Source: Macrostomum lignano
Taxonomy: Eukaryota
Direction: 5' to 3'
DNA length: 46,052 nucleotides
Assembly: GCA_002269645.1 (NCBI GenBank)
Contig: NIVC01004436.1
Location: forward strand, 1-46,052
Under the pieces are notes generated by a model. That model did not search any database and had not been told where the DNA came from. It saw only the letters and a list, made by a program, of their open reading frames with translations. Shown one piece after another: positions 1 to 46,052 of the stretch. A program made the translations under genes and the position numbers. How positions within the stretch are numbered: the stretch's first letter is position 1; each line of letters starts with the position of its first letter.

Positions 1-1290
1 CACGTTCGACGTGTCCATCCTGACAGTGTCGGAGGGCAGCATGTTCGAGGTGCGCGCAACGCCGGCGACACCCACCTCGGCGGCGAGGACTTTGATCATC
101 GTCTGGTTGAGCACCTGATGCAAGAGTTCAAGCGCAAGTACCGCAAGGACATGAGCGGCAACGCTCGGGCTGTGAGACCCTTCGGACTGCGGCTGAGCGA
201 GCGAAGCGAACGCTGAGCAGCTCGGCACAGGCGAGCATCGAGATTGACTCGCTGTTCGAGGCATCGATTTTTACACGAGCGTCACCAGGGCTCGATTCGA
301 GGAGCTGTGCGCCGACCTGTTTCGCCAGACGATGGAGCCGGTGGAGCGAGCGCTGAGAGACGCCAAGATGGACAAGAGCAACATCAACGAGATCGTGCTG
401 GTTGGCGGATCAACCCGGATCCCGAGGTGCAGAAGTTGCTGCAAGAATTCATGGGCGGTCGGACGCTGAACAAGTCGATCAACCCGGACGAGGCGGTCGC
501 CTACGGAGCTGCCGTGCAGGCTGCGGTGCTGACTGGCGTGAAGGACGACACGATCGACGACCTGCTGCTGGGATGTGGCGCCGCTGTCTCTCGGCATCGA
601 GACCGCCGGCGGGGTGATGACCAAGATTGTCGAGCGAACAGCCGCATCCCGACCAAGGCGACGCAGACGTTCACCACCTACTCGGACAACCAGAGCGGCG
701 TCACGGTGCAGGTGTTCGAGGGCGAGCGAGCGCTCACCAGAGACAACCACCTGCTGGCCGGTTCAACCTGGACGGGATCCCGCCAGCGCCGCGCGGAGTC
801 CCTCAGATCGAGGTGACCTTCGACGTTGACGCCAACGGAATCCTGGTGGTGTCGGCGAAAGACAAGAGCACCAGCAAGGAGGAGAAGATCACGATCACGA
901 ACGACAAGGGCCGCCTCTCGAAGGACGAGATCGACAGGATGGTGCGGGATGCGGAGAAGTTCCGCGAGGAGGACGAGCGGCACCGCGAGCGCCTGGCGGC
1001 CCGCAACCAGCTCGAGTCGCTCGCCTTCCAGTACAAGCAGGCTGCCAACGACTGCAAGGACAAGCTGGGCGAGAAGGACTCCGCCGAGGTGGTGGCCGCC
1101 TGCGAGCAAGTGATTTCCTGGCTGGAGAACAACCAGACTGCGAGAAGGACGAGATTGCCACCAGCAGCAGCAACTCAGCAGCCGCTGCTCGCCAATCATG
1201 GCCAAGCTTCATCAGCAGCAGCAGCAGTCTGGTCAGCCTCAGCCTGGACATCAGCGAGCTGGAGGACCCACCGTTGAGGAGGTCGACTGA
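1..1290 (+). CDS. HSP70: Cytosolic HSP70, 3' part (5'-truncated by the window), intronless, with several 1-2 nt frameshifts (assembly errors or pseudogene)
   Basis: Reading across frames gives [71 protein letters not shown] and [15 protein letters not shown]. Ends GGA GGA CCC ACC GTT GAG GAG GTC GAC TGA (GGPTVEEVD*) at 1290. AATAAA at 1496. Confidence 0.95.
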
Positions 1291-3958
1291 GCATCATCTG
1301 CACATTCTTCAAGGACTGAGTCTCTTGAATAACCTTTGTACAAAGTATACATTTGCAATTTCATGTATCATCGATCGAGCTAGTTGTAAAAGTTTCTGCA
1401 TTGTCTAAATGCGTGTCCATTCTAAAATCTTTGCATGACTTGCGTTTAATCGTATTCTGCATTCAGAAACGTGTTTTTCACATTTTACATGTATGAATAA
1501 ATGTTAAATAAACGCGTTTAACATTAGTGATTTTTTATCATTACTATTACATTATTCAACCAAATATTAATTTAGTTGTTTATTGTCATTTCTCACATGG
1601 CATATGCATGGCGATCGTTTAGGGACGGTCTAACGGGATTACAATGGATATTAACTCGGACTTGCTGGCCTATCTATACATGTTAGTCCAGTACCCGTTT
1701 CTCCCAGTCCCAGCCAATTCAGAGGAGAGTTCATATACATTTTACGGTATTCATATATTTAAATGCTTACTGAAGGAACTGAAGAACTAATCACAATTCG
1801 CAATTTTCTCATGCGCCCATTCTTTCTCTAGAGTAATTTCTCAGACAAGCTTTAATTCTAACGTCCTTATAATTTCATGGACATGACCTGTCGCTGTAAC
1901 ACTCATTTGAACCTCCTGCGCTGTAAGCAAATTTTTTGCGACAACTCTTGCACTGTCGACGTCCCCATGTATACAGGTTGTACATAATGCTTGCAATACA
2001 TGTATATTAAACACCTGTTTATAATACATAAAGCATATTTTAGAAAACAAATTGCAGTCTGAAAAAGTACTGAGTTTCACTAAGGGTATACATATACCAT
2101 AGATTTTAAGAGCTGGCTTTATGTTCATTTTGATGTTACAAGTACACTGATACATGCAGCTGTAACTATACCAATACTATATATACATTGTACCATATCC
2201 AACCGTTGAGTAATTTTATGGACGATCCAATTGATCGGACATACAGTCTGCATGCACTACATAGATTCGGTTCTGAACCGGAATCGAGAATACGAAAAAG
2301 GTCATTGGTTTAGATCGACAAAGCCAGAAGAGAAGAAACAAATATGGGGATCCAACTGGCTCTGGTTCCGAAAGTACTATAGAATCAATAGAATCGATAC
2401 TTAAAGTATTACCCAACAACTGTAAATAAGCAATTAATTTCAAAAGTGAATGACTCCGTAAATTAAAAACAGTAAAACATAGTTTATATATTACTTTTAC
2501 GTATTGACTTTTAATTTACATTGAAGTTTTTGTTAAAATATGTAATAATTTACAAAATTTTAAACTTTCCAAGAAAAATCTAAGAAAAGCTCAACAACTT
2601 AAAATAGTACCTCTTGGTCCTTTTGTAAGCATGAGGAACAAGATGAATAACTATCTTTATGATCTTAATTTCGAAATATATTAGAAGTAATTTCTGGTGT
2701 TCTTAACTGTTAGGAATTATAAACGCGAGTTAAAAACAATGAAAATATACAATGTTCTTAGACTTAAAACAACGAAAAGAGTTTTGTCATTGCGTGATTA
2801 TTGTCTACAGGAACTACACTACTGTATTAAATTGGTCGTTTGCTCTTGGTACAAAAAGCCTTACTTAATATCTACCTATTTAAATCCAGAATAGGTGCCA
2901 ATTACAAAGTCGATGGTTTTACTATAATTTTTTAAATGGTAACTATAGGGCTTTTCACATTACCAATTCCAGAACCAGAATCGGTTCGGATTTCCAAAAA
3001 AACAGTATAACTATTTAACTTTTTTGAATGTTTAACTGCCTTAACAGCCTCACTTTCACAATTTTTCACTTTCTTCTTGGCTATTGCCATACAATAATCA
3101 CAACTTTAAAGCACTAATATCCCTCTAGTTTAGGAGACAAAAAGTTATACTTTACAAATTGGATCTGGTTCTAGAACCAGAATAAGCAATATGAAAAGGC
3201 CTTGTTAAACAATTAGTAATTTTTATTATTCTATGATATACAAATACTGTGTGCTCTTTTTGTTAAAATGAAGAATATTTACTAATGAATTAACAGTTCT
3301 GTCTTATAGTTTGAATTTATTACTTGTGAATAACCAAAGTATACATGAAATAAATGCTTATGTTTATCTTAATAGAAAAACTATATAGGCCTCGCCTTTT
3401 CAGTTTAATATAATTTATATTTTTATTTCATTTCATTAAATTCATTAATTTGATTCAAACTGATATCACTATTAAATAGAAGGTAGGCCTAAACATTGCC
3501 AATTAATATAAAGTATGTTTGTTTTGGATAGCCATAAGTAAATAAAAAAGATTTATTAGATTTCTAAAATGTCATTTTTATCATAAATATAAACTTAAAT
3601 ATGCAAAAATTAAAATAAATTGATTTCGTGTTTTATTGACTAGTAGTAATACATAAATCCACTTATACTAAATACTTTACTATATCTTCTAAGAATGGTA
3701 TAATTACAATTTAGCTAGAGTATAATTTTTCTTTGATTATAAGTCTTAGGCTTTAATATTTGATAAGTATCTAAGCTATTATAAATCAAATCAAGTGAAT
3801 ATATGGCAAATTTAACAAGTAGCGATAACTATATATTTTTAATAGTTTTTTACTCAGAGTTTTCAAATTATATTTTTTGCTTTTTATATCATCTTTATAT
3901 ACACAAAATTTAAAATAATCATTTATTTATTGCATGGATATTACTTAAAGAACAAGTC

Positions 3959-30915
<26,957 letters not shown>

Positions 30916-30954
30916 GTTCGTTTTGGTTTGTTTTATTAGTGTAGAATCTCTCAC

Positions 30955-31604
30955 TAATTCCCCCTGTGAGACTTGGCATCTCAGCATTCCCCCTGTGAGA
31001 CTTGGCATCTCAGCATTCCCCCTGTGAGACTTGGCATCTCAGCATTCCCCCTGTGAGACTTGGCATCTCAGCATTCCCCCTGTGAGACTTGGCATCTCAG
31101 CATTCCCCCTGTGAGACTTGGCATCTCAGCATTCCCCCTGTGAGACTTGGCATCTCAGCATTCCCCCTGTGAGACTTGGCATCTCAGCATTCCCCCTGTG
31201 AGACTTGGCATCTCAGCATTCCCTCTGTGAGACTTGGCATCTCAGCATTCCCTCTGTGAGACTTGGCATCTCAGCATTCCCCCTGTGAGACTTGGCATCT
31301 CAGCATTCATCATTTTGGGATTATAAGAATTGGCATCTCAGCACCCCCCTTTGGGATTATAAGAATTGGCATCTCAGCATCCCCCCTTTGGGATTATAAG
31401 AATTGGCATCTCAGCATCCCCCCCTTTGGGATCATAAGAATTGGCATCTCAGCATCCCCCCCTTTGGGATCATAAGAATTGGCATCTCAGCATCCCCCCT
31501 TTGGGATTATAAGAATTGGCATCTCAGCATTTCCCCTTTGGGATTACAAGAATTGGCATCTCAGCATCCCCCTTTGGGATTATAAGAATTGGCATCTCAG
31601 CATC
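30955..31604. repeat. Intron 26 minisatellite: 29-bp unit switching to a related 36-38-bp unit at ~31305, cut off by the Polinton
   Basis: CAGCATTCCCCCTGTGAGACTTGGCATCT, then CAGCATCCCCCTTTGGGATTATAAGAATTGGCATCT; ends abruptly at ...CAGCATC|AGTAGT. Confidence 0.9.
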
Positions 31605-31875
31605 AGTAGTATAGAAAAAGACGCTTCTAGACCCAGAGCACTTTTTTAATGACCGTTTTAAGGGTCTAGAGGGGGGACACGGGGGGTAAATAAAAAAACA
31701 CATCTAAACACCATTAATACATCTAATCACCCATAATCACCCCTAACAATAAAAATCACATCCCAACACTTCCAAACACTCCCCAACACCCCCCTCGCGT
31801 CCCCCCTCTTAAGACCTTACAAACGGCCATTAAAATAAGGTCTGATCTGTAAGCGTCTTTTTCTATACTACTACT
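31605..31875. repeat. Terminal inverted-repeat cassette: arms 31605-31686 and 31789-31875
   Basis: AGTAGTATAGAAAAAGACGCTT (31605-31626) is the exact reverse complement of 31851-31872. Imperfect pairing continues to the G6/C6 tracts. Confidence 0.9.
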
Positions 31876-31957
31876 CTATAACCCCTTGCCCGCGCCGCAG
31901 GCGCGAAGGGTCGGAAAGAATAGAAGCTATTTATAGTCAGCTCACCTACCCACCCAA

Positions 31958-32055
31958 CATTCCATTTAGACCAGATTTTAGACCAAACAAAACTAGACTA
32001 TCGTTTTGGTTTTCGTTTTCAAAAATTTGGTCTAAAATCTGGTCTAAATGGAATG
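31958..32055. repeat. Perfect 30-bp inverted repeat with a 38-nt spacer
   Basis: CATTCCATTTAGACCAGATTTTAGACCAAA (31958-31987) and TTTGGTCTAAAATCTGGTCTAAATGGAATG (32026-32055). Confidence 0.95.
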
Positions 32056-32093
32056 CAGACAATCTTTTTCTGTTACTAAAAATAGAACAAAAA

Positions 32094-32492
32094 ATGACAC
32101 ACGTTACACATATGCAAAATCTGAATGAATTGCAGGTAGGAGACCCAGTTGAATACCGAGGTGAGGGGCTTTTTGATGTGGTTGGAACAGCAGCAAATTT
32201 TGTTAAAGACAATATGGGGCTTATAGGGCAAGCTGGCTCTGCAGCAGGCTCTATAACAAATGCTGTAAAAGGAGGAATTGAAGCAGCTAGAGCGGCAGAA
32301 GAACTAAAGAAATTGAGAGATTTTAACGACACCCTCTCACAAATAAATGCAATAAAAGATTTAAAGCTGGCACAAGCCGCACAACCAACAGAAACCCCCA
32401 CGAAAAGCGCACCAATAAGTAATAAAGATATTCAGGATTTTAATAAAATGTTAAATACTATTAAAGGTGGAAAAGGATTAAAGAAATTTTAA
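32094..32492 (+). CDS. Putative virion core/membrane-lytic precursor (adenovirus pVI-like), 132 aa
   Basis: YRGEG|LFDVVGTAANFVKDNMG looks like a cleavage site followed by an amphipathic helix. C-terminal KGGKG|LKKF. Function is inferred. Confidence 0.5.
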   Translation: MTHVTHMQNLNELQVGDPVEYRGEGLFDVVGTAANFVKDNMGLIGQAGSAAGSITNAVKGGIEAARAAEELKKLRDFNDTLSQINAIKDLKLAQAAQPTETPTKSAPISNKDIQDFNKMLNTIKGGKGLKKF

Positions 32493-32502
32493 CAATATAA
32501 AA

Positions 32503-33489
32503 ATGGACACAGATAACGACCGCTTATATTTTATAGGAGAAATTGTAGACACTTTAGATTTGGATGATAATAAACATAGCCACACAATGTTAAAAAGATT
32601 GGATCGATTAGGTAAAAAGTTTGACTACGACATCGATACATTTAAACTCGCAGCAAAATATGCACAAGAAGGAAGGCCAATATCCTTTAAGAATCGCGGC
32701 AGAAATTATAGGTTGACAGACTCCGATGTGAAATTTTTAATGGAGACTCACACTAAAAAGGACGGCGGATTACTACCCATTCTACCGCTTCTTTTAGGGC
32801 TTGGCGCAGCTGGAGCAGTCGGTTTAGCCGGAAAAAGAATTCATGATAATGTAAAACAGCTAGGAGAGTTAAGAGCGAAACAGGGGGGAATCTTGCCCCT
32901 TGCAGCTTTGCTCCCAATAATTTTTGCAGGAATTGGAGCAGCTGGAGGAGTTGCTGGCGGAGCAGCTGGAATTGCAAAAGCAGTAAATGACAAAAAAGCT
33001 GCGGACGAAAAAGCTAAAAGAGAGGCCGAATTTCAAAGACAGCAAATAACGCAGGACGCACAATTTAAACAAAAACTTATCGATACAATTAATAGTAGTT
33101 CAGCAACAGCAGAGCAAAAAAGAAATGCAGAAGCTAGGTTAGCAGCCGGAAAAGGTTTACTCTTGCAAGGAACAAATCACGGGAATGGTTTGGTACTAAA
33201 AGGAACAACCCAAGGAAGTGGAGTTGTAGCAGATAAACTACATGAATTTGGTCAAACTTTAGAAAAAACGGGTGAGAAAGCTAAAGGATTTTTTGACAAT
33301 ATTGGATCCAATTTTAGACCAGCTGTTCAGAAAATTTTTAATAAATTAGGAAAAGATTTTAACATCATTGAAAAACACGACGGAAGCGGATTATATCTCG
33401 AAATGCGACCAAAAGCAGGTTCAGGAATTTTCTTAAATTCAAACGTTATGGGCAATGGATTGCTATTACCAAAAGCAGATCTCGAATAG
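32503..33489 (+). CDS. Core polyprotein with two adenovirus pX/mu-like segments, 328 aa
   Basis: GGLLPILPLLLGLGAAG and GGILPLAALLPIIFAGIGAAGGVAGGAAGIAKA resemble the adenovirus pX C-terminal GGILPLLIPLIAAAIGAVPGIA. Six further GxG-hydrophobic motifs follow. Confidence 0.7.
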   Translation: MDTDNDRLYFIGEIVDTLDLDDNKHSHTMLKRLDRLGKKFDYDIDTFKLAAKYAQEGRPISFKNRGRNYRLTDSDVKFLMETHTKKDGGLLPILPLLLGLGAAGAVGLAGKRIHDNVKQLGELRAKQGGILPLAALLPIIFAGIGAAGGVAGGAAGIAKAVNDKKAADEKAKREAEFQRQQITQDAQFKQKLIDTINSSSATAEQKRNAEARLAAGKGLLLQGTNHGNGLVLKGTTQGSGVVADKLHEFGQTLEKTGEKAKGFFDNIGSNFRPAVQKIFNKLGKDFNIIEKHDGSGLYLEMRPKAGSGIFLNSNVMGNGLLLPKADLE

Positions 33490-33573
33490 GCTCCTGGGGG
33501 GAGGGTCTGGACACCAAAAACACAAAATTAAAAAATCAATAATTCAAACATTATATAAATTTTATTCTATAAA

Positions 33574-36500
33574 ATGGAAGCAATTTTAGCTCAAATCGAC
33601 AACCCTGAACTTAGAGCACAATTAATAGCTCAAATCGATGCACAACGAATTGCCGATAGGGCTGAAATAGAAGCAAGAATTAGGGCAGAAAATGAGATAC
33701 GTTTAGAAAGACAATTAAATGATATTAATAACCCCCAACCACAAGGACAAAATGGAGCTGAAGTAATATATATAGATATAGATATAAATACAAATTATAA
33801 AGAATATTTTAAACAAATGAAAGATAAATTAAAGACCATATTAAACAATTATACTATAAGGCCAAATAACAAACGACAGCCAATTAAGTATAAAATAGAA
33901 GTTGAAACAGAATTTAAAAAACCAAATATTCTTAATGCAAATTCAGAAATTGAAGTAATAAATAACTTTTCACAAGAATCATATAAAACATTATTATCAA
34001 TGGGAAATTACAACAATCAATTCGATCAAATAGAAGCTGAGTTTGATGAATGGATAGATAAGATGACAGAAAACGGATCTGGGTTTATATTTGTATCCTG
34101 TAATTCAGCAACAGTAAAGATTGCACCCATAGAAATTCTTAAAGGACGATCACATATGAAGCTCAAATTTAAATCACCTATGATTATAAATCCAGACAAT
34201 AAAGATAATAAATGTTTATTATGGTGTTTATTAATTCATAAATATCACAATCAAGTAGAATCACACATTAATAAAATATATAATTATAGACAATATGAGG
34301 ATGAAATAATAATGAAAAACATATCATACCCAGTAGCAATAGATGATATATATAAGATTGAAAAAATGAATGGTTTAAATATTAATGTTTTTACAATTGA
34401 AGAACCAAAAGATCTAGAAGAAATTCAGCAGGTCGATCCAGAATGGTATAAGAAAAACTGTTATCTTGTTAAGCCAGCAACTGATATAACAGCACCAGAT
34501 CAAATCGATCTTTTGTACATGCAGCGCGAAAATGAAACACATTATATATACATAAAAGATATTAGTTCTTTTTTAAGAGAAAATAGAAATAGATATCCAC
34601 TATGTAGAAATTGTTTTACATTTAAAAAGGATGAAACAGCTCTTAAAAACCACCAACGATTTTGTTTAGATCACAAATTTACTAATGCTATAATGCCAGC
34701 ATCTGAAGATGCAACCCTAAAGTTCCAACAACATTATATGGCAGTTAAAAAACCAATAGTAATATATGCTGATTTTGAAGCAACAAATGTTCCCTTAAAA
34801 GAATCACAGACGGCATCTGATGATGGGGATCATGCAAAGCATGCGACCCTACGGGACGAATGCACAAAAAAATTGGCACAACAGTTTCCGAATAGTTATT
34901 GTATATATGTACACTCTGTAGCTGATCATATATTTAAATCAAGGATGATTACTTACCACGGTAATGATGCAGCTAAGCACATGGCAGAATCATTAGTAAA
35001 TGTATTTGAATATATTCAAAATCAATATGATAAATTATCAAAAAATATTAATATGACAAATAAGGATAGAGACAATTATAAAAATGCAACAAATTGTTTT
35101 ATGTGCAAAAGATATTTAAGTAAGAAAAATAAGATACGAGAACATTGTCATCTAACAGGAAATTATCGAGGGGCAGCATGTAGATCATGTAATGCAAAAG
35201 AAGGAAAAGGATGTAAGGAAATACCAGTATTTTTTCATAATGGTTCCGGATATGATTTTCATTTCTTAGTTCGAGAATTGCTTCATTTAGGAAAGGATGA
35301 ATATGAAATAAATATATTACCTAAAACATCAGAAAATTACATATCAATAACATATGGTAAGAAATACTCCCATCTAGTTTTTCTAGATTCCTTGAGATTC
35401 TTATCAACATCTTTAGCAAATGTTGTTTCATCATTAGTTCCAAAACCATGGGATTTAGAAATAGTAAAGAAAAACTTTCCAATACTATTGAATCGTTTCA
35501 AAAAAGAAAAACTATCCGAGGAAGAACTAATGCTATTAACTCGTAAGGGCATCTATCCATATGAATATGTAACATCTGAAGACGTATTTTTTCATACCGA
35601 ATTACCCCCAATTGAAAAGTTTTATTCAACATTATCACAAACAAACATAAGTGAATCGGATTATGAACACGCTCAAAAAGTATGGAAATACTTTAATTGT
35701 AAAACATTTAAAGATTATCATAATCTATATCTTAAAGCAGATGTTCTCCTATTAGCTGATGCATTTGAAAACTTTAGGAATCATACATATGAGAATTTTA
35801 AAATTGATCCCGCATATTGTTTCAGTGCACCGGGATTAACATGGGCTTGTGGTTTGAAACATACAGATGTTAAGATTGATTTACTAACTGATCATGATAT
35901 GTTGTTAATGATTGAGAGAGGAATTCGCGTGGATTCTCGGGTGTACTAGGAGATAGATATACTAAAGTAAATAATAAGTATCTTCCAAATTATAATAAAA
36001 AAGAAAAATCATCATATGTATTATATCTAGATGCAAACAATTTATACGGTGGTTGTATGAAACAAAAATTACCAATAGCTGATTTCCAATGGGAAGATGA
36101 CCCCGATTATTACAAAAATATTCCCGAAGGAAGGGGCTGTATCGTAGAAGTGGATTTGCAATATACTCGGGAAGCAAAAGCAAAAACATATAAATATCCT
36201 TTAGCTCCAGAGCATTGTTCAGTTAATGAAGATGATTTATCACAAACACAAAAAGATTATCTTAAAGCAGATAATGCAAAACATCTAGCAACAAAAAAAT
36301 TAATATTAAATTTACATGATAAGAAAAACTATGTAGTGCATTATAAGCTTCTACAATTTTATGAAAAGCAGGGATTAAAAGTGTCTAAAGTACATCGAAC
36401 AATATCGTTTATTGAGGAAGATTGGTTAGCTAAATATATTGACTTTAATTCAAATCAGAGACAGATGTCAAAAACAAATTTTGAGAAAGATTATTGGAAA

Positions 36501-37571
36501 TTAATGAATAATGCTTTTTATGGAAAAACGGTTGAAAATATTAGAGATAGAACCCAATTCCATTTAGAAAAGGATATTGATAAAGCAAAGAAATATTTCT
36601 CAAAACCTAACTTTAAAGACTTTATAAAATTTGATGATAACTTTATGGGTATTCATATGAGAAATAAAACAACAAAATTTCTTAAACCAATATTTATTGG
36701 AATGGTTGTTTTAGATTATGCAAAGCTGGTAATGTATGAATACTATTATGATGTTATAAATAAAACATGGCCAGATAACTATCCAATATATGCAGACACC
36801 GACAGTTTGGTATTTAAGGTTGAAACAGAGGATCGGGCAAAGCCCGCGAACCAAAGGTTCGATGTCTATAAAGATATGGAAAAAATTAAGGATACATTGG
36901 ATACCTCCGACTATCCGGATAACCATCCTTTAAAATCAGATCAAAATAAAAAAGTTGTACTTAAAATGAAAGATGAATTAAATAGCAAAATCATAACCGA
37001 GTTTATAGCAATAAGATCAAAATGCTATGCATTTAAGGTTTTAGGACAGGAGGGAGAGGTAAAAAAAATAAAAGGGGTATCAAGAGCAGCAGTAAAAAAG
37101 ATAACATTTGATGATTATAAAAACGTACTTTTAGATTACCTTAATACAATTGAAAATTATCATGCTCCACAATATCGATTAAATTCAGATAAGCATCAGA
37201 TGTTTGTCATCGAGACAGATAAAAAAACATTAAGTCCATTTGATGATAAAAGATATTTAGATGATAAAATTAAAACATATCCATATGGTTTAAAAGAAGA
37301 GATAAAAAATATGATAAAAGATAAAAAACAAAAAGAAGATATAATAAGTAAATATAATGAATACAAAGCGGCAATAAATAATTATTATTACGATTGTGAT
37401 TGTGAATCCGAATGTGATTGTGAATATAATACATTTCTAGAATATGAAAAAGATATAGATAATTATTATTCAACATTTCCAAAAGAACTTAAAAAATTAA
37501 ATAAGGAAAAAGTCTTGAATAACTGGAAGAGATTAACAGAAAAATTACTTATCGGGTCTGTAAAAAACTAA
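33574..37571 (+). CDS. polB: Protein-primed family B DNA polymerase, split by one missing base at ~35930
   Basis: ExoI IYADFEA, ExoII FHNGSGYDFHF, ExoIII YLKADVLLLAD. Endonuclease-VII-like Zn module CFMC...EHCHLTGNYRGAACRSCN. Restoring one G gives GIRGGFSGVLGDRY...YLDANNLYG (motif A). Motif B KLMNNAFYGK, motif C YADTDS. Confidence 0.95.
34829..34860 (+). mobile_element. Double-hairpin insert, copy in the polB exonuclease region
   Basis: AT CATGC AAA GCATG CGACCC TAC GGGACG AA. Confidence 0.75.
36832..36863 (+). mobile_element. Double-hairpin insert, copy in the polB palm just after YADTDS
   Basis: AT CGGGC AAA GCCCG CGAACC AAA GGTTCG AT. Confidence 0.85.
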
Positions 37572-37904
37572 AGCATGTAATTGTTTGAGCAAATCATTAA
37601 CTTCAATTTCATATATTATTGAGCACCAATTATCCTCACAGTCGGCAGGGTAACTTAAACAATCCTTTATTTTTTTCCTAAGTTTTTTTATTTTTCTAAC
37701 CAATCTATCTATTTCAATTTCAATTACTATTTCAGCATAAACAATATCTTGTCTTAAAAAACGTTTTCTTTTATCTATCTCATATCGGATGGGAAACATA
37801 TCGTCCCCATACTCATGATATTTCTGAGATATAATTATATTTATTTTTTTATTAATATCATTAAGTTCACGCTCTTTAGTGATAAGGATTTTTATCGTAT
37901 CCAT
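37545..37904 (-). CDS. Hypothetical viral protein, 119 aa
   Basis: Open ORF with AAAATG start context; no family recognised. Confidence 0.55.
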   Translation of the reverse strand: MDTIKILITKERELNDINKKINIIISQKYHEYGDDMFPIRYEIDKRKRFLRQDIVYAEIVIEIEIDRLVRKIKKLRKKIKDCLSYPADCEDNWCSIIYEIEVNDLLKQLHALVFYRPDK

Positions 37905-37908
37905 TTTC

Positions 37909-38252
37909 TTATAAAAAATTTAAACTTATTCGGTCATCCTCCCAAACAGCCGCCAATTTTACAGTCCTATCACTCTTTTTATTATTTGTTTGTTTTAGTT
38001 TAAATTGCAATCCACCCTCGTTGCAGTATTTCATAACAAACGCTTTAGGTTTATTAATAACTAAAACAGGAAAATTTTTAACATCATCTCCGCTTAGACA
38101 TAAAATTTTTTGCCCATCTAATTGTAAAAATATTGATTGAAGCCAATAAATTTAACCTGTCTCAAACATACAATATTATATTCTTTATTCTCCAACATAT
38201 TGGGTGTGAGATAATTAATCACATTAGAATCGGTTTTGAACCAGCTCTCCAT
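37909..38252 (-). CDS. Hypothetical viral protein of ~114 aa with one frameshift (absent from the ORF track)
   Basis: MESWFKTDSNVINYLTPNMLENKEYNIVCLRQVKFIGFNQYF/LQLDGQKILCLSGDDVKNFPVLVINKPKAFVMKY...ISLNFL*. The span is 344 nt, one short of a multiple of 3. TAAAAATG start. Confidence 0.55.
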
Positions 38253-38278
38253 TTTTAATCTAAAAAAATAACAAAAAA

Positions 38279-38791
38279 ATGAAAGACATTTATGTTTGTA
38301 ATAAATGTAATGTGACTATGCACAGAGGGCAAACAGCAAACGGAGATATATATCATATGTGTTATTCATGTTCTAAAATATATCAATTTGAAAAAACAAA
38401 AAAGATTGAAAACTCATATTACTATTTTAAAAACACAATTTTAAGAAATCTTACAAGAGACATTTCTGATCCAATTTTAATTCCCGGAAATAATGTTTAT
38501 TTATATAATAACTTTTTCCATTTAAATAAAGGAAAGGGATTAAGTTCGAAAGACTCCGAAAGGATTTTAATTTTAGTTGGATATTATTTCAATTTTCTTA
38601 TTCGAGAGAATACAAAGTTTATAAGGATAGGTAACATACCTAACGAAATGTTATTGAAAAAGTCATTGGAATTTTTATGTATTGATAAAAAATTTAAACC
38701 TAGGATCAGAAGAGAGTTACCACTTTGGGAAGAATATATAACATATGCATTAGAAAAACTAAACAACCTGAAGTTCTACAGCACTTCCTGA
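38279..38791 (+). CDS. Zn-ribbon (CxxC-x17-CxxC) hypothetical protein, 170 aa
   Basis: VCNKCNVTMHRGQTANGDIYHMCYSC. Confidence 0.6.
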   Translation: MKDIYVCNKCNVTMHRGQTANGDIYHMCYSCSKIYQFEKTKKIENSYYYFKNTILRNLTRDISDPILIPGNNVYLYNNFFHLNKGKGLSSKDSERILILVGYYFNFLIRENTKFIRIGNIPNEMLLKKSLEFLCIDKKFKPRIRRELPLWEEYITYALEKLNNLKFYSTS

Positions 38792-39414
38792 CCGCGGGCT
38801 TTGTGCCCCAGTAGCAATAGTTTCAGGTTCGTAAATGCCTAATGTTTCTATCGGTGGAGCTTTGGGTTTATCGAGTCTCAACTCTTTTAATTCCATATCG
38901 GTAAAAGTTTCAACATCTAAAATTCTATTTCTATCTTTTAAATATTTTTCATATAATTCAACCGCGGTTGATAATTCATGAATCGTTATCTCTCCGTCAT
39001 CCAATATTTTTTGCACATATAAATATAATTGATTTTTATATTGCTTGCAACATCTCTTAAAGATTTATATTTTTCCTTTCTTTTTTTAAGATATAATTTA
39101 ATTGCTAAAAGTATTGATAAGTTCCTGATCAATTCAAAACCTGATATTGAGCCAATTGAAATACCTAAAAATAATTGAGATAAATTAAGAGTTGGAATAG
39201 ATTGTAAAATACCTAAAACGATTACACATAACATTGATAAGCTTCCAAATCCAATATTGAAAAAGTCCATATTTCTTATATGGTTTGAAACTCTTCTTAC
39301 TTTTTTAGCATATAAATCATAATCATAGTTAATACGATCAACATTACTTAACATCTGACCTTTACGTTGGTTGAACCGGTCGCGTTCCCATTTATCTGCT
39401 TCAGATACCGACAT
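38759..39414 (-). CDS. Polinton-type two-TM protein, frameshifted near 39010
   Basis: Coiled coil, two hydrophobic segments, KKRKEKYK, then /QKILDDGEITIHELSTAVELYEKY. Resembles the conserved Maverick membrane protein pattern (from recall). Confidence 0.65.
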
Positions 39415-39426
39415 TCTCGTCTATTT

Positions 39427-39726
39427 TTAATAGCACCAAAATGAATTCCCCACGCTCTTTGGGTATTTGCCCGAGCTTAATAGGTATTGTATTGGAGTGA
39501 TTCTTTCTTTTTTCTCCCATTTAAATCCTATTTTCCAAAACTCTTGAAGTATAATATGATTTTTTAATAACTTAATTAATTCTTGAAGCTTCTTATTATC
39601 CTGAACATTTACAGTACTAAATAAAAATTTGGTATGAGATTTGAATGTTTTTATATTTGATTCTTGTTTAGGAATAGGAATAATAACATTATTTTGCCGC
39701 ATCGATGGAGTTCTACTAAAAGCCAT
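39427..39726 (-). CDS. Hypothetical protein, 99 aa
   Basis: Starts at CTATATAAAATG (MAFSRTPSMRQNN...). The longer ORF in the track fuses it to the fibre tail. Confidence 0.45.
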   Translation of the reverse strand: MAFSRTPSMRQNNVIIPIPKQESNIKTFKSHTKFLFSTVNVQDNKKLQELIKLLKNHIILQEFWKIGFKWEKKERITPIQYLLSSGKYPKSVGNSFWCY

Positions 39727-39799
39727 TTTATATAGAAATATTTTATATTTGAGTAGGAGGTTTTTCCAAATAAGCAGTAGAGGAAAAACATAACCAAAC

Positions 39800-41765
39800 G
39801 ACGTACTACCACAACCTGCGCCACGAATAAAATGTGCAGCATCCGATCCTCCAGTTCGAGCACCAAAACCCATAAGGTTCCAGATTTATCTAAAGTTCCC
39901 CAAGTTCCACTATCATATGTGAAAACGTTCTGCCAATGAGGGTAAAGAATCACCAGCAACATTGTATGATGAATCTATACCAAACCCTTTGATTTAAAAT
40001 ATTAATTTCAAAAGATGCCAATCACCGTTATCAATATTTGCATAGGCTACAGTTTGATCCGCGTCAGTATTAACATCGCGCGGCTTGATCCGTCTGATTT
40101 TTTTTACTCCAAAACCAAATTTATCATGCCACTCACTAGCAAAAACTATCAATCCGGCGTCGGTTGATAATCCAGATCCAAATTCCGATGTTGGACGTTG
40201 GTGACAGTATGCATAAAACCAAACCGCATCTGCACCATCTCCTGTAGCATTAGCAACTCGGAAAAAGAAAGACGCAGATATATTTTGAAAATGTGTGAAA
40301 TTGAATTGTAAAGCACCACTTACTCCAGAAGTTTCACGAGTAATTCTAGCGCCGTTTTGATAATCGATATAAGAAGCGTCACCAATTAAAGAACCGACTG
40401 GATATATATCTCCGGCGGTTGTTGGATTTTGATATCCAGACCAATTGCAAATTACTGGTTCGAACAAGGCCGCATCAATAGCAGGTATTCCATCCAATTT
40501 ATTTTTATCGCTTCCAGACATTCTACCATTTGATGTTGGAGTAGCTAGCTGATCTACGTACGCTCGCGGAACTGCAGAAAGTATTTGAGTTGGCCAATTA
40601 AGATCTTGAATTTCAACACGGTGTTCAAATAATTGTATTTGACGAACCTCGATAGGTTGTGTACCGGTACCACCAGTTGGGAAGAATACGCTATAATATT
40701 TCCAAAAATTAGTCGTTAAATTAGATAGAGCAAATGATGTTGCTTGAACTGGTGATCCCGACGTAGTTAATGTCGTCCATGAATCGGTAGCAACATTTTT
40801 TGCGCGAACCGACCACCCCGAGGGTATCTCAATTGTTTCACTGCCTGTAATTCTTAATTCAAATATTCTTCTATTATAACCTAAAAATTCAAATTGAATT
40901 TCCATATTGGTTGTGGTTCCGGTATTTGGTGACCATTGTGTCGCAAGGCTTCCATCTCCAACTCGAAAAGCTGTGTTGCCATTTTCAGATGCTGTAAGAA
41001 CAACATCAGGATTTGAAGTATTTGATGTAAGCGGCGTGGTAAAAATATCGGCGTCGGTTGCATTAGCTCGCTCGTTTACTTGGCCTAGAGTTATCGAGTC
41101 TGCGTTATCTGTTCCAAATAATAAATTTGTTAATTTAAAATTATTCATATTAATATTACCACTACGAGTGGCAACTTGATTATCGACATAGTTCTTATCA
41201 ACCACTGAATCACTAGTTGTAATTGAAACATTTATAATTCGGTTGTTGCTCATATCTAGGTTTCCGGTTGCGGTGGTTTGAACATAACGTGAATCAGAAT
41301 CAGTTCGAGAATAAGAATCAGTTACATCTCTTTTTAAATTTAATCCATTATCAACTTCGGTTTTGGTATAAGAATCGGCTACGTTCCGTTTCAAATTTAA
41401 TGAATTATCAACTTCGGTTTTGGTATAAGAATCGGCTGTTCGTTTTAAATTTAATGAATTATCAACTTCGTTTTGGTATAAGAATCGGCTGTATTGCGTT
41501 TTAAATTTAATGAATTATCAACTTCGGTTTTGGTATAGGAATCGGCTACGTTCCGTTTCAGATTTAGTGAATCATCTATTTGAGTTTTGGTATAGGAATC
41601 TGCAACATTTCTTTTTAAATTTAATTTATTATCAATTCAGTTTTTTTATAACCTTCATCTCATTAATATATCGATTATCTCCAAATGTAACACTTATTCC
41701 ACCAGATGTGCCACCACCACCACTACTTGTTGTTCCGTTCCATGAGGGTGTTCCAGAAAATAACA
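39800..41765 (-). CDS. Fibre/spike adhesin: 19-aa shaft repeats, discoidin (F5/8C)-like domain and legume-type lectin domain; several frameshifts; both ends approximate
   Basis: (NLKRNVADSYTKTEVDNSL)n; GNINMNNFKLTNL...DSITLGQV; AFRVGDGSLATQWSP...WKYYSVFF...EVRQIQLF; GRMSGSDKNKLDGI; GARITRETSGVSGAL...DGADAVWF...GFGARTGGSDAAHFIR. Confidence 0.7.
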
Positions 41766-41776
41766 TTTTTTACTGT

Positions 41777-42246
41777 CTATTTTATAGAGTCTAAAATCGT
41801 GCCATCGGCTCGCATGCTTTGCATGATATTCTTAAATACTTCGGGGTTTACACGAGCTTCATTCGAAAGTCGATATAAAAAATACAACGCCGCTTGCCCG
41901 CAATAACTTTTATCAAAGGTTTGAAATTGTTCATGATGATCTCCACATAAACGATTTTTAGTATGATTAAATTTATCTTTTATTTCCTGTAACGGAGGAA
42001 GCGCGTATGAATCAAAAAAATAAACAAGTTTAGGTTTGAATAAACTGCCGACCAATGAACACCATTTTCTTTTGTTGTTTCAATATTAACAATGAAAGAT
42101 CCATATTGTGGTAAGTCTTTGATCTCATCTCGCATAACACATCTGAATGGTTTTATTTTTAACTGCCTCGCCCAATTTGTTAATTCGATATTGCTTGTTG
42201 TGTCCGTTCCATATCTTTGTTTAAAATCATCCCACGTCATGGTCAT
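41777..42246 (-). CDS. Adenain-like cysteine protease (Polinton PRO), frameshift near 42050
   Basis: IVNIETTKENGVHW (His), YFFDSYA (Asp), EQFQ...SYCGQAALYFL (Gln, Cys). Confidence 0.9.
41796..41827 (-). mobile_element. Double-hairpin insert, copy at the protease C-terminus
   Basis: Reverse complement: AT CATGC AAA GCATG CGAGCC GAT GGCACG AT. Confidence 0.8.
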
Positions 42247-42247
42247 T

Positions 42248-42457
42248 TTATGTTCCTGAAAAACTCTTGGTTTTAGTTAGTTTCGTAGGTGTGGGTTTTA
42301 ACAATTCCTTTCTTATTTTATCAGCTTGTAACTGCCTTAATTTTGCTAGTTCTAGTTCGTAATTATCTTCAGCTTTTTTAACTTTTTCTGATTGTTTTTT
42401 TATTAAATTATTATTATTATCGTGCTTTGCACGCGAACATGTTGTTCGATTACCCAT
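42248..42457 (-). CDS. Small basic hypothetical protein, 69 aa
   Basis: AAAAATG start, coiled-coil-like, contains a double-hairpin insert. Confidence 0.5.
   Translation of the reverse strand: MGNRTTCSRAKHDNNNNLIKKQSEKVKKAEDNYELELAKLRQLQADKIRKELLKPTPTKLTKTKSFSGT
42419..42450 (+). mobile_element. Double-hairpin insert, copy in the 69-aa ORF
   Basis: AT CGTGC TTT GCACG CGAACA TGT TGTTCG AT. Confidence 0.85.
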
Positions 42458-42470
42458 TTTTACTATAGGA

Positions 42471-43252
42471 TTAAACCTGTTTTATACGTAAAATTATTGT
42501 TATTGACTGCCCACCAAAACTTATTAATCTATCGCTTTCATCTACAATCCTAATATAAATTGATTGAACATTATATTGATTTAATGGGTAATATATTGGG
42601 GTTTGAGGTGATACAATCATTTTCTCTCCAATTGGAACAGCAAGAAATGGGATTGAATAAATAATTCCACGTTGAACCAAAACTCCATTATTATCTGTTA
42701 TATAACCGCCGTTTGAATGTCGGTTGTTATATTAATTGTATTACTCCACCCTCAATTTTCCACTGTATCACCGGTGCTTGATGTGGTAACTATTCGGGAA
42801 TTAAATCCAAGTATGGTTCTGAGTGAATTTGCAATTGTGAAATCAACCTGATATCCGGATCCTAGTGATAGTGTGAATCTGCCAGACGGTAAATCAACAC
42901 CTATAACAATTGCTCCTGCTACCCAATCACCATTAGTTGTTAATTCTCCTTCTATATAAGCATTCAAATCAGTATAGCTATACGCTCCTGGGTTAACGCT
43001 AAATGTTGTCCAATTGGCTCCGGAATCTTTAGAATATCTAAATTGATTATTTGTTGCATTAATTAATTGAGGCATGTTGAAAACCGAAAATAGAATTAAA
43101 CCTATTTGATAACTTAGGCTTTGATCAAGTTGTAATGGATCGCGCAATTGAATCCGTTGCTCGCTGGTTGTCATTATAAACTGTAATGTTGTACTAAATT
43201 TTGAATTAGTTCGATCTACCAATTGTTTTATAGTATTTAAATTTGTAGTCAT
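42471..43252 (-). CDS. Minor capsid (penton, single jelly roll), frameshifts near 42750-42700
   Basis: IQLRDPLQLD...YQIGL...INATNNQFRY...PGAYSY...SLRTILGF and GIIYSIP...SPQTPIYYPL...IYIRIVDESDRLISFGG match the Polinton penton pattern. Confidence 0.85.
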
Positions 43253-43266
43253 TTTTATAGTGGGAA

Positions 43267-43293
43267 ATCGAACCGTTCGCGGACTCCGTCGAT
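43267..43293 (-). mobile_element. Shortened double-hairpin insert, intergenic (ATPase-penton)
   Basis: Reverse complement: AT CGAC GGA GTCCG CGAA CGG TTCG AT. Confidence 0.65.
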
Positions 43294-43297
43294 CGTG

Positions 43298-44091
43298 CTA
43301 TGTCTCTTCTTCCTCATTATCTTCTTTTATCAAATTTGTTAAAATTCTATGTTTCCTTTCTAACCTCGGATTGATATAAATATGTTTGTATTGGCTATCA
43401 TCCCAAATTTTTTTACACATACTTTTAAATGGTTTTGCATCCAATCCGGGATTAAATCTAGCGTGAATATTTTGTAGATCATAGTTATCTAAATCAAACA
43501 TTACACAACAGCTAGCATTCTTTTTTATAATCGATTCTAATTCTCTAAAGGATTGAGTAAGATAAAAAGCTCCAATTCCATCTCCTCTACCACTAACAAA
43601 AATTTCCTTTTGCAATTCTTGATCACCGTCATTAATACAATCATCAAAAATAATTAGTGTTTTATCATGTTTTGGAATTTGATCATAGGCTAATCGGGTT
43701 GATACTCTAACAGTTGGGGCTCGATCGGACGAAGTCCGCGACCCTTCGGGCGATCGGTGATGTTTTCTGGCTGTTGTGCCATTGTTTTACATAAATCCTC
43801 AATGTCTGCTAGATTAAATCGCGGTTCGTCATCATCCTCATATTGCTCATATGCTCTTAACATTCTAAACAAGACATCTTTTTTTAATTTGTTTTTTAAT
43901 CCATGTTTAAGAAATTCATAATATTTTATTCTAGGTTTATTAGTATAAATTATTAAATTATTATAGTCTAACATTCCATCTGTTGTTAATAAATCGTAAA
44001 CAAAGTGTGTTTTTCCTTTACCTGATCCTCCGATTACTAAACAAAGAAAAGGATCATTTGGAAATATCTTATCGTGTTTTGCCTTTACCAT
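43298..44091 (-). CDS. A32/FtsK-type genome-packaging ATPase, one missing base at ~43751
   Basis: Walker A IGGSGKGKT, Walker B LIIFDD, GRGDGIGAFYLTQS. Confidence 0.92.
43724..43754 (+). mobile_element. Double-hairpin insert, copy in the ATPase (1 nt short)
   Basis: AT CGGAC GAA GTCCG CGACCC TTC GGG-CG AT. Confidence 0.8.
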
Positions 44092-44156
44092 TTTTAAAGA
44101 AATAATTTAAATAGGCGCGACGGTCGAGACCTGACAGCGACGTGCACTGCATCATT

Positions 44157-45624
44157 TTACAATGGTGCGTCCCGAACAATCGTGCCATCAGCTTTAGCAA
44201 TTGACATATATTCCTCTAGAAACAATACGTGGGCGTCAAGTGCCTGATTACCGGTTTTATTAATCTCTAACATATAATTAAGTCCAATATTGGCTACGTT
44301 TTCTTTCTGTGCCGTTAGATCATAAACAACCACTGGATGAATGTTTAGAAACTCTGTGGGTGTGTACTGAGGGACGGCATACGCTTCATTTTTAGCATAA
44401 TCTTGATAATATTTTATAAAATCATTAACATTATTATTTGCTATATTTAAATTTAGGGGGTCTTTAACCGGATAATATTGATCATCAACCTGCAGGCGGA
44501 TATTCTGAACATTAAACTCGTTAATTGCAGCAACTGCATTGTCTGTTGCGGTGGCTGCTTGTTCTGCTATGTCACCCGATTGAAGCCAATATAAATCCCC
44601 ATTTGCTCTTTTACTCCTTCTATTTGTTATTTTAAACCAAACAAAAATATATCTCACCCGACGTTTTGATGTCAGTATTTGCCACTGGAATGAATCCTGG
44701 TTATTATTAATGGTTCGCATAAAATGTCGACGATTCAAATAAAATATTTCCTGATCATGCGTTAACTGATTATCGATGTGTTTTAAAAGTGGGCTGTTAC
44801 CTCAATAGTTGGTACGACTAATTGAATTGAATCTATACGAACTGCTATATCGGTTGAAATTGAGGTTCCATAAAGTATCCTAGGCTGATATCCACCAGAT
44901 ATTTGCAACTGTATCCCAAATTTTAATCCTTTCCATACCCGATTTGGTGAGAAAACCCAAATAGTGGAAAGATTGAAAAGTCCTGCTCATATGCTGTTGC
45001 TGTGGTTAAAACCGCGACTGGGAATTTATTCTGACGATCTATAAAACCAGTATTAATATCTTTTGTATTAGTCATAGTGGTTACAACTGGAACTATGTTT
45101 GTATTAAGGTAAACAATTAGCGCTGCAGTATCTGCACCGGCTGCGTTTTGTACATTAGGGAAAACTACTGCTTGCCCGTTACCTTTATCCGGCATCCACC
45201 CAACATTATCACCAACTTGTTTTGATAAATAAGTATAATTTAAATGTTTCAAAACTCCATTAATCTCTGCGGGGTTTGATGATGTCTCAACCTCAGCACC
45301 ATTAACAGTTAGTTGAGCTTGGGAAAAACATTTATAAAACCAATCATTTTCATTATTATTCCGGATCGATCTGCGATATCTCCGCTGCAAGAGCAGTTCC
45401 ATCATTTCTAGTATACAACCATCTAACGCGGAAAAACGCATTTTTCATATCCAATATAGTGTTGGTTGCGCCGATGTCAAAAGTTACCGTTCCAGTAGTA
45501 AAGTTATTTGAATTATCACTTGTTGGTAGGGTATAATTTAAATCTTTGCTCTGACCTCATTAATATACTGTCGGTGCTTTTTGAAATGAAATTTATCACT
45601 CCACATAGTTTTTGTTTCAGCCAT
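44157..45624 (-). CDS. Major capsid protein (double jelly roll, hexon-like), several frameshifts
   Basis: TVTFDIGATNTILDMKNAFFRV, FSQAQLTVNGAEVE, RVRYIFVWFK, NIRLQVDDQYYP, TPTEFLNIHPVVVYDLT. Confidence 0.85.
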
Positions 45625-45658
45625 TTTTTTAAGTTAAAAAAGTTTTTTATGTTAAAAA

Positions 45659-46052
45659 ATGAGTCAATTTATGGACGTTGATGGAGAGTTAGCGATTTAT
45701 AAAGAGAAGCAAAGATATTCTGATTTTGTTAGAAATTTACAAAAAAGAAAGTTAGGAATACAATTAGCGGGTGAAAGATTTGCTGCTCCTTTTGTTAATC
45801 CTATTACTGGGAAAATTAGTGAACTAGAAAAAACAGATAAAGATCTTCTGGAAAAAATTGCTAAAATACTGAGCCAAAAGAGGATGAACTTTTAGATGAG
45901 CCGCCTGCTTATGATGTTGATCAAGCTCAAATTGAGAGTTGCAGAGATTAGGGCCAGAACGGGGTGGAGTTGATGAATATCCGAGAGCTGCACCAACTAG
46001 TATTGCTGTGACAGATTTAGGTAATAATAATTATCGAATTGGTGGAGTTGAT
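45659..46052 (+). CDS. Polinton hypothetical protein, 5' part (likely frameshifted near 45890 and running off the window)
   Basis: YSDFVRNLQKRKLGIQLAGERFAAPFVNPITGKI resembles a conserved Maverick ORF N-terminus (from recall). Confidence 0.45.

Follow-up and report, generated by a model that had tools for sequence, protein, structure and literature searches.

We analyzed a stretch of 46,052 nucleotides from the genome of Macrostomum lignano (GenBank assembly GCA_002269645.1, contig NIVC01004436.1, positions 1 to 46,052, forward strand), hereafter called the window. The left part of the window is occupied mainly by a host gene resembling VPS13D, and the right part (31605-46052) by a virus-like element of at least 14.4 kb that is cut by the window end. 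Its genes specify a protein-primed DNA polymerase B (pPolB), a double jelly-roll (DJR) major capsid protein, a penton-like protein, a fibre, an A32-type ATPase, and an adenain-like protease. An earlier annotation of this DNA (the original prediction) had claimed that more than 14 kb of viral genes start at an AGTAGT motif; the genes for polymerase, capsid, ATPase, protease, and fibre were indeed found there, at a level of similarity well past what chance would give, and the first four of them agree with its further claim that the element is of the Polinton type. Based on the gene set and on an inverted-repeat arm starting with AG, we assign the element to the Polinton/Maverick type (adintovirus-like, Orthopolintovirales). 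The probability that it is such an element, with its left end at 31605 and integrated in an intron after the VPS13D-like exon ending at 30915, is estimated to be about 0.7.

Genes of the virus-like element

The polymerase gene (33574-37571, plus strand) contained one frame change and no in-frame stop. Its relatives, which were detected with E values from 1e-131 to 1e-56, came from metagenome contigs of 5-20 kb and from an aphid scaffold of 18.5 Mb with three copies. Two of the relatives carried PF03175 (DNA_pol_B_2). The columns of exonuclease motifs I-III and of polymerase motifs A, B, and C were conserved in the polymerase alignment. The polymerase also matched the Pfam family Endonuclease_7 with 30.2 bits, which is above the cutoff. 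An endonuclease-VII-like Cys/His zinc finger (35040-35240) was inserted in the exonuclease part of the protein, and this insert was common to some of the metagenome relatives (P0002, P0011, P0013, and P0014).

The genes of the morphogenesis block were compared with those of a 4.8-kb metagenome contig, L004 (ENA ERZ27299524), in which all genes are open. The gene for the DJR major capsid protein (44157-45624, minus strand, ~490 aa) had four frame changes and no in-frame stop in its true frame, and it spanned residues 1-486, the full length, of its closest intact relative P0016 over three frames. Among 1.84 billion representative proteins, 21 relatives of the C-terminal capsid fragment were found (best E value 2e-49), and four of the more distant capsid relatives passed the Pfam cutoff for DJR-like_dom. 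In BFVD, the structural model of P0016 (pTM 0.73) resembled DJR capsid proteins of an adintovirus, a MELD virus, virophages, and giant viruses (E values from 1e-13 to 1e-9), and in the PDB those of faustovirus, SGIV, PBCV-1, mavirus (6g45), and Sputnik (3j26). A word-indexed protein search with the middle capsid fragment returned no match, and sequence searches of the PDB with five queries (polymerase, capsid profile, ATPase, protease, and fibre) yielded nothing significant.

The packaging ATPase gene of the A32 type (FtsK/HerA; 43298-44091, minus strand, ~250 aa) contained one frame change. Its product was 63-65% identical to that of the intact 252-aa gene of L004, which passed the Pfam threshold for Pox_A32 (27.1 versus a cutoff of 22.8 bits). 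Both Walker A and Walker B motifs were present; the N-terminal fragment in the window contained the Walker A motif and gave a weak Pfam match of its own. The adenain-like (clan CE) cysteine protease gene (41777-42246, minus strand, ~150 aa), also with one frame change, was 63-71% identical to the intact 146-aa gene of L004. All four catalytic positions (His, Asp, Gln, and Cys) were present in it, and these columns were conserved across an alignment in which Peptidase_C5 was found in six of the ten members and Peptidase_C48 in two.

A penton-like gene, putatively for a minor capsid protein (42471-43252, minus strand, ~260 aa), had one frame change and one stop within the aligned stretch, and was 54-57% identical to the intact 261-aa gene of L004. 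It adjoined the ATPase gene, as it also did in five IMG/VR relatives. The putative penton had no significant Pfam match, and a single-sequence model of the window fragment had a pLDDT of 34, which is unusable. The fibre-like gene (39994-41766, minus strand) encoded a Gly-rich N-terminal part, a repetitive shaft, and a C-terminal globular part, with two frame changes in the repeat region. Its shaft was made of about six repeats of 57 nt (19 aa) in a tandem array at 41311-41651. These repeats matched the start of the L004 fibre, and a weak match to a PHROG tail fibre was also obtained (E value 3e-5). Past the stop of the 466-aa fibre ORF (39400-39993, minus strand), open stretches resembling a continuation of the globular domain were seen in two frames, and the fibre gene may thus be longer than this ORF, with more breaks.

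Between the penton-like and protease genes lay a basic open reading frame (ORF) of 69 aa starting with MG (42248-42457, minus strand), which had no counterpart in L004. At the right window end, a gene oriented away from that for the capsid protein (45659-46052, plus strand) began with a 78-aa ORF, continued as open stretches in other frames, and was cut by the window end. The 78-aa ORF was 38-39% identical to a 71-aa ORF of L004 and matched the N-terminal part of a 240-aa protein in L023, the 2.4-kb contig of P0017. In L023 this divergent gene encodes the single 240-aa protein (1-720, minus strand), whereas L004 has two ORFs of 71 and 135 aa in its place (455-1070, minus strand).

On the polymerase side, two intact ORFs preceded the polymerase gene, one of 132 aa (32094-32492, plus strand; no Pfam match) and one of 328 aa (32503-33489, plus strand). 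The latter had no Pfam or PHROG match and encoded two Gly/Ala-rich hydrophobic segments and repeated G-x-G-L motifs. Its partial relatives adjoined the protease gene in three IMG/VR contigs (L014, L016, and L022), and we infer that its product is a virion or core protein. Five small ORFs lay between the polymerase and fibre genes: one of 119 aa (37545-37904, minus strand), one of 170 aa (38279-38791, plus strand), and three of 85, 142, and 148 aa (38759-39873, minus strand), of which the 142-aa one had a hydrophobic core. The 170-aa ORF had a Cys-rich N-terminus and was 29% identical over 132 aa to positions 6061-6528 of a second metagenome contig, L003 (ENA ERZ27256510), where this counterpart was likewise kept downstream of the polymerase gene.

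Relatives of the element and its classification

The closest relatives of the element were metagenome contigs, with amino-acid identities of 39-71%. L004 had the same gene order of capsid, ATPase, penton-like, protease, and fibre repeats, and its capsid protein was 39-50% identical to that of the element, in addition to the identities given above. L003 encoded the closest polymerase (39-53%). Unlike the element, both contigs are short environmental fragments with all genes open. No relatives of the capsid protein or the ATPase were detected in IMG/VR or in the JGI metagenomes, each of which was scanned with both proteins.

Polintons/Mavericks, including animal adintoviruses and MELD viruses, resemble the element in having pPolB, a DJR capsid protein, an A32-type ATPase, and an adenain-like protease, in the linkage of polymerase relatives to rve integrase genes on genomes of 12-21 kb, and probably also in a penton gene, in an inverted-repeat terminus starting with AG, and in residing in an animal chromosome. 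They differ from the part of the element in the window by their integrase, right repeat, and target duplication, none of which is visible here. The element is also distant in sequence from any named relative, as shown by its polymerase, which was at most 43% identical to the aphid copies, and by the small number of its capsid relatives. A further difference is the endonuclease-VII-like zinc-finger insert of its polymerase.

Genes for rve were found beside the polymerase gene in the contigs L001 and L002 and in most IMG/VR relatives. Because most polymerase relatives carry rve, often close to the polymerase gene, the element appears to belong to an integrase-bearing lineage, and its integrase gene and right end would be expected just past the window. 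The closest relatives of the capsid module, L004 and L023, are too short to tell whether an integrase is present. One relative, L017, had 151-bp terminal inverted repeats at its contig ends, and the contigs of the relatives measured 12.3-21.6 kb, compared with at least 14.4 kb of the element in the window. The earlier description of the element as near-complete is therefore a reasonable guess with respect to length, although the integrase and the right inverted repeat are absent from the window.

The probable left terminus and the host gene

At 31605 the sequence switches to AGTAGTATAG, which we regard as the left terminus of the element. It starts with AG (AGTAGT), as do the 5'-AG ends of Polintons, and its only inverted copy in the window lies 268 bp inward. 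Together the two copies form a fold-back unit of 271 bp (31605-31875) with an outer arm at 31605-31689, an A/C-rich loop of ~100 nt, and an inner inverted arm at 31788-31875 that ends with ACTACTACT. The arms were ~80% alike over ~85 nt and identical in their first 22 nt, and an inverted repeat of 27 nt at 93% was detected in the unit. The outer arm had two copies of AGT and the inner arm three, that is, one extra AGT. The terminal 20-mer occurred at two places only in the window, at 31605 and inverted at 31853-31872, where none would be expected by chance. As single-stranded DNA, the unit was predicted to fold with -56 kcal/mol (z = -11.9). A match of the terminal 18-mer to an IMG/VR contig (L024) was attributed to chance, as there was no likeness outside those 18 nt.

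The original prediction had placed the motif ACTACT at the right end of the element, to be followed by AGCATC if the integrase had made a 6-bp target duplication. ACTACT already occurs in the inner fold-back arm (31872-31875), where the next bases are ACTCTA or CTATAA, while AGCATC stands immediately before 31605. With unlike flanks, the 271-bp unit does not qualify as an insertion of its own that made a duplication of 6 bp.

The fold-back unit was followed by a non-coding leader (31876-32093), which held a perfect 30-nt inverted repeat (31958-31987 and 32026-32055, with a 38-nt spacer) just upstream of the first viral ORF. Each arm of this repeat contained a direct reiteration of TTAGACCA. 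The palindrome may be regulatory or origin-related. No second copy of the 489-bp non-coding end (31605-32093) was found in the 46-kb window.

To the left of the element, two intronic minisatellites occupied 30928-31604. A 29-nt unit in about 12 copies (30957-31308) was followed by a 37-nt unit in about 8.5 copies (31288-31604), and the second array stopped exactly where AGTAGT starts. These minisatellite units did not occur inside the element, and no repeat common to the host side and the element was found at the junction. The last visible exon of the host gene ends with TATCAG and is followed by GT at 30916-30917, the predicted splice donor. The donor and the minisatellite right before the element are thus located where the original prediction had put them. 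Its claim of an insertion in an intron agrees with the abrupt boundary after the donor and minisatellite; the window offers a single junction, and from it the intron insertion is inferred.

The host gene (3950-30915, plus strand) comprised many exons and extended from a chorein-type N-terminus at 3950 into the VAB domain, as judged by Pfam matches and by identity to P0001, a fragmentary M. lignano protein model. Exons of P0001 mapped to 21138-26483 with 97-100% identity and without frame change, covering 730 aa of the gene. The ORF at 25623-26915 was 99% identical to this model, an M. lignano UniRef entry named "UBA domain-containing protein", which identifies the host side as M. lignano. Along the gene, Pfam matches to VPS13_N (5954-9557), VPS13_M (19618-23521), and VPS13_VAB (25623-26915 and 30091-30939) were found on the plus strand in this order, with a UBA-like stretch (24279-24572, plus strand) between the last two that scored just under the Pfam cutoff (20.9 versus 22.4 bits, E value 3e-4). 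A UBA domain between the middle region and the VAB domain sets VPS13D apart from its paralogues. This domain order supports the assignment of the flanking gene, previously called VPS13D, as VPS13D-like. The last VAB match reached profile position 433 of 570, so that the visible gene breaks off about three quarters through this domain. Right of 30916, the window contained no further host coding sequence, and none for VPS13_C, ATG2_C, or PH, as had been claimed; the window holds part of the gene, rather than a gene without its C-terminal region.

Nearly all introns of the VPS13D-like gene held a minisatellite of their own. Those between 4258 and 30178 were each distinct, with units of 14-46 nt in up to ~100 copies (for example 11432-12847 and 9625-10775), and the arrays gave rise to many long spurious ORFs on both strands. 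One array of ~20 copies of a 42-nt unit (28200-29050) duplicated an exon end together with its splice donor (CAAACAG followed by GTGAGC), and the intron therefore opens with ~20 tandem 5' splice sites. A strong shift in GC content was seen inside the gene (1300-4910 region), with AT-rich first exons (37% GC) and later exons of 55-65% GC. Further left, 1-1280 (plus strand) contained the 3' two-thirds of a cytosolic HSP70 gene with an EEVD-type C-terminus, which is intronless here. No tRNA genes or Rfam families were found in the whole window.

Integration, decay, and assembly error

We consider it probable that the element is integrated in host DNA rather than joined to it in error. Integration is favoured because the join falls on the first base of the AG-starting inverted-repeat arm, because the host side and the element share no repeat that could mislead an assembler, because the GC content of the element (~30%) equals that of the host intergenic DNA between HSP70 and VPS13D (29% at 1300-3949), and because polymerase relatives are embedded in animal chromosomes (aphid). 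Orthopolintovirales insertions have been reported in rhabditophoran flatworms (bioRxiv 10.1101/2025.04.19.649669), and a Maverick expansion in Dugesia is already in the literature; the latter was also counted toward integration. The drop in GC content at the element, to ~30% from 50-60%, was considered as a sign of foreign DNA or contamination and ruled out, given the equally low GC content of the host intergenic DNA.

Several observations weigh against an integrated element of this type. Neither a Pfam search of all ORFs of at least 60 aa nor tblastn with rve proteins from L001 and L002 detected an rve integrase in 31605-46052. The left junction is the only one in the window; the right inverted repeat, the target duplication, and the downstream VPS13D exons all fall outside it. 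Exact-product look-ups with two ORFs of the window and with P0001, made to reach the neighbouring sequence, returned nothing. A polymerase paralogue from M. lignano was not found among 5.8 billion proteins, the best match being 39% identical, which gives no sign of a repeat family resident in this genome. The splice donor at 30916 was called from sequence alone. The inverted recurrence of the terminal sequence, which distinguishes this terminus from those of Polintons, is not foreseen by a model with one inverted repeat per end. Finally, and against sequencing errors as the cause of the frame changes, these were not enriched at long homopolymers: the intervals that hold them were checked and had no unusually long homopolymers, so that simple homopolymer miscalling is not supported as their source.

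The frame changes bear on the state of the element. Six of its genes were broken by 10 frame changes and at most one in-frame stop, and two further possible frame changes in the right-end ORF had no comparator. We lean modestly toward indel errors in the consensus of a long-read assembly, close to the end of a contig, rather than decay, as their cause; this presumes that the 46,052-base window is a whole contig. Nine of the 10 fell within the morphogenesis block, close to the end of the window (p about 0.001-0.012 if spread uniformly). In these frames, 5.6% of point substitutions would make a stop, and several stops would be expected to accompany so many indels in real decay; the finding of at most one therefore speaks against decay. 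The HSP70 fragment, located at the other window end, was broken in a similar way, with conserved blocks over all three frames, about 8-9 frame changes, and no in-frame stop, for which a poor consensus at the contig end is more likely than a dead copy. The intervening 25 kb read cleanly. Published M. lignano assemblies are PacBio-based and contain many base errors, and one of them was polished with RNA-seq (PMC5730564), which would correct expressed exons and leave silent genes uncorrected. If the frame changes are consensus errors, the underlying copy would be young. The full combination, in which the frame changes are assembly errors, the copy is a young and essentially intact adintovirus-like one, the lineage thereby gains its first animal host, and the fold-back terminus is an unusual one, is put forward tentatively, with the odds somewhat against it.

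Alternatively, the element could be integrated but old and dead, with the frame changes being real mutations of a decaying endogenous viral element. The six broken genes would fit such decay, and in the fuller tally that adds the two unverified right-end changes, 10 of 12 belonged to the minus-one type and the changes showed no clustering at long homopolymers. The fold-back arms have diverged to ~80% identity, and the absence of frame changes from the 730 aa of VPS13D-like exons matched by P0001 indicates that the assembly is not uniformly poor, although P0001 may derive from a similar assembly and would then not be an independent check. Besides the scarcity of stops, the clustering of breaks toward the window end, and the similarly broken HSP70 fragment, decay is opposed by the single break in a polymerase gene of 4 kb, by the 132-, 328-, and 466-aa ORFs that remain open, and by the intact catalytic residues of the protease and Walker motifs of the ATPase. 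We regard this explanation as unlikely, but as one to be taken seriously.

It is less probable that the 271-bp fold-back stands apart as a miniature inverted-repeat element of its own, being a repeat of the host or a deletion derivative from the same family, in which case the large element would begin at 31876 without a recognisable terminus. The unit does bear both termini (AGTAGT and the inverted end of the inner arm) and folds strongly, its GC content of 42% is higher than that of the element body, and derivatives reduced to their termini are common among DNA transposons. However, its two flanks show no 6-bp duplication, the minisatellite of the host is not taken up again on its far side, the 46-kb window contains no further copy, and it would have to be placed by coincidence exactly at the boundary between host and virus.

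A mis-join of the contig is also improbable. In this case, a free linear virus genome, from the worm or from another organism of the culture, would have been fused to host DNA through a chimeric read or during assembly, and VPS13D would carry no insertion. Such a genome has a natural DNA end exactly at 31605, the window ends inside the element with a single junction, and the consensus quality is apparently poor at both window ends. M. lignano assemblies are error-prone, with 32-64% error-free bases according to REAPR (PMC5730564), and the finding of no M. lignano paralogues, with environmental contigs as the closest relatives, would also fit a free virus. The observations that favour integration speak against this explanation: no shared repeat could have caused a false overlap, the join at the first base of the terminal arm is what integration predicts, the GC content does not point to a foreign source, and both the aphid copies and the rhabditophoran insertions place relatives in animal chromosomes.

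Other virus groups share parts of the gene set. Mavirus, other virophages (Lavidaviridae), and polinton-like viruses have in common with the element the DJR capsid fold (the P0016 model versus 6g45 and 3j26) and the module of ATPase and cysteine protease, but sequence similarity was undetectable. Most virophages and polinton-like viruses have no large protein-primed polymerase, and their known hosts are protists. Adenoviridae resemble the element in protein-primed replication from inverted termini with short reiterations, in the adenain protease, and in a fibre with a repetitive shaft. They differ in a genome about twice the size, in a hexon instead of a small 490-aa DJR capsid protein, and in having no integrase-linked relatives. 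That the element is a polinton-like virus, a virophage, or an adenovirus-like virus rather than a Polinton is very improbable: the resemblance of the capsid model to virophage and giant-virus proteins and the presence of an adenain-like protease and a fibre gene are outweighed by the large pPolB with its rve-linked relatives on 12-21-kb contigs, which polinton-like viruses and virophages as a rule do not have, by the distant capsid relatives in Pfam DJR-like_dom, and by a size and gene set that fit Polintons and adintoviruses rather than adenoviruses.

For an integrated Polinton/Maverick-type element, a life cycle can be proposed from its family. Starting from a protein primer at the inverted termini, its own polymerase would copy the linear double-stranded genome, and the terminal AGT reiteration could act as a kind of short terminal repeat for slide-back initiation. 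A retroviral-type integrase, expected past the window, would insert the genome into host DNA. The capsid module would permit packaging: the capsid and penton-like proteins, together with the ATPase, the protease, and the fibre, would serve to assemble a small icosahedral particle and bring it to maturity. The intronic copy would be spliced out together with the intron, and redundancy of the host genome could make any effect on VPS13D tolerable. Extensive duplicated blocks are described for M. lignano assemblies (PMC5730564), and the species is a neopolyploid (PMC10733133); other copies of the VPS13D-like gene are therefore likely. The concern raised by the original prediction over the lethality of VPS13D loss is accordingly weaker than it had been stated, and the insertion probably has no bearing on the function of VPS13D.

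Polintons/Mavericks are widespread in animal genomes and have already been reported in flatworms, so another intronic copy would be unsurprising; for Macrostomum itself, no published account of Polintons turned up in our literature search. The repetition of the terminal sequence as a fold-back would be notable if it is repeated at the other end. The locus also calls for caution in annotation, as the seeming pseudogenisation here may be an artefact produced by the long-read consensus close to the ends of contigs. The element ties a sparsely sampled virus lineage to M. lignano, a tractable model animal. If the frame changes are assembly errors, M. lignano would be the first animal host for a lineage of capsid, ATPase, and protease genes that is otherwise represented by a few short metagenome contigs.

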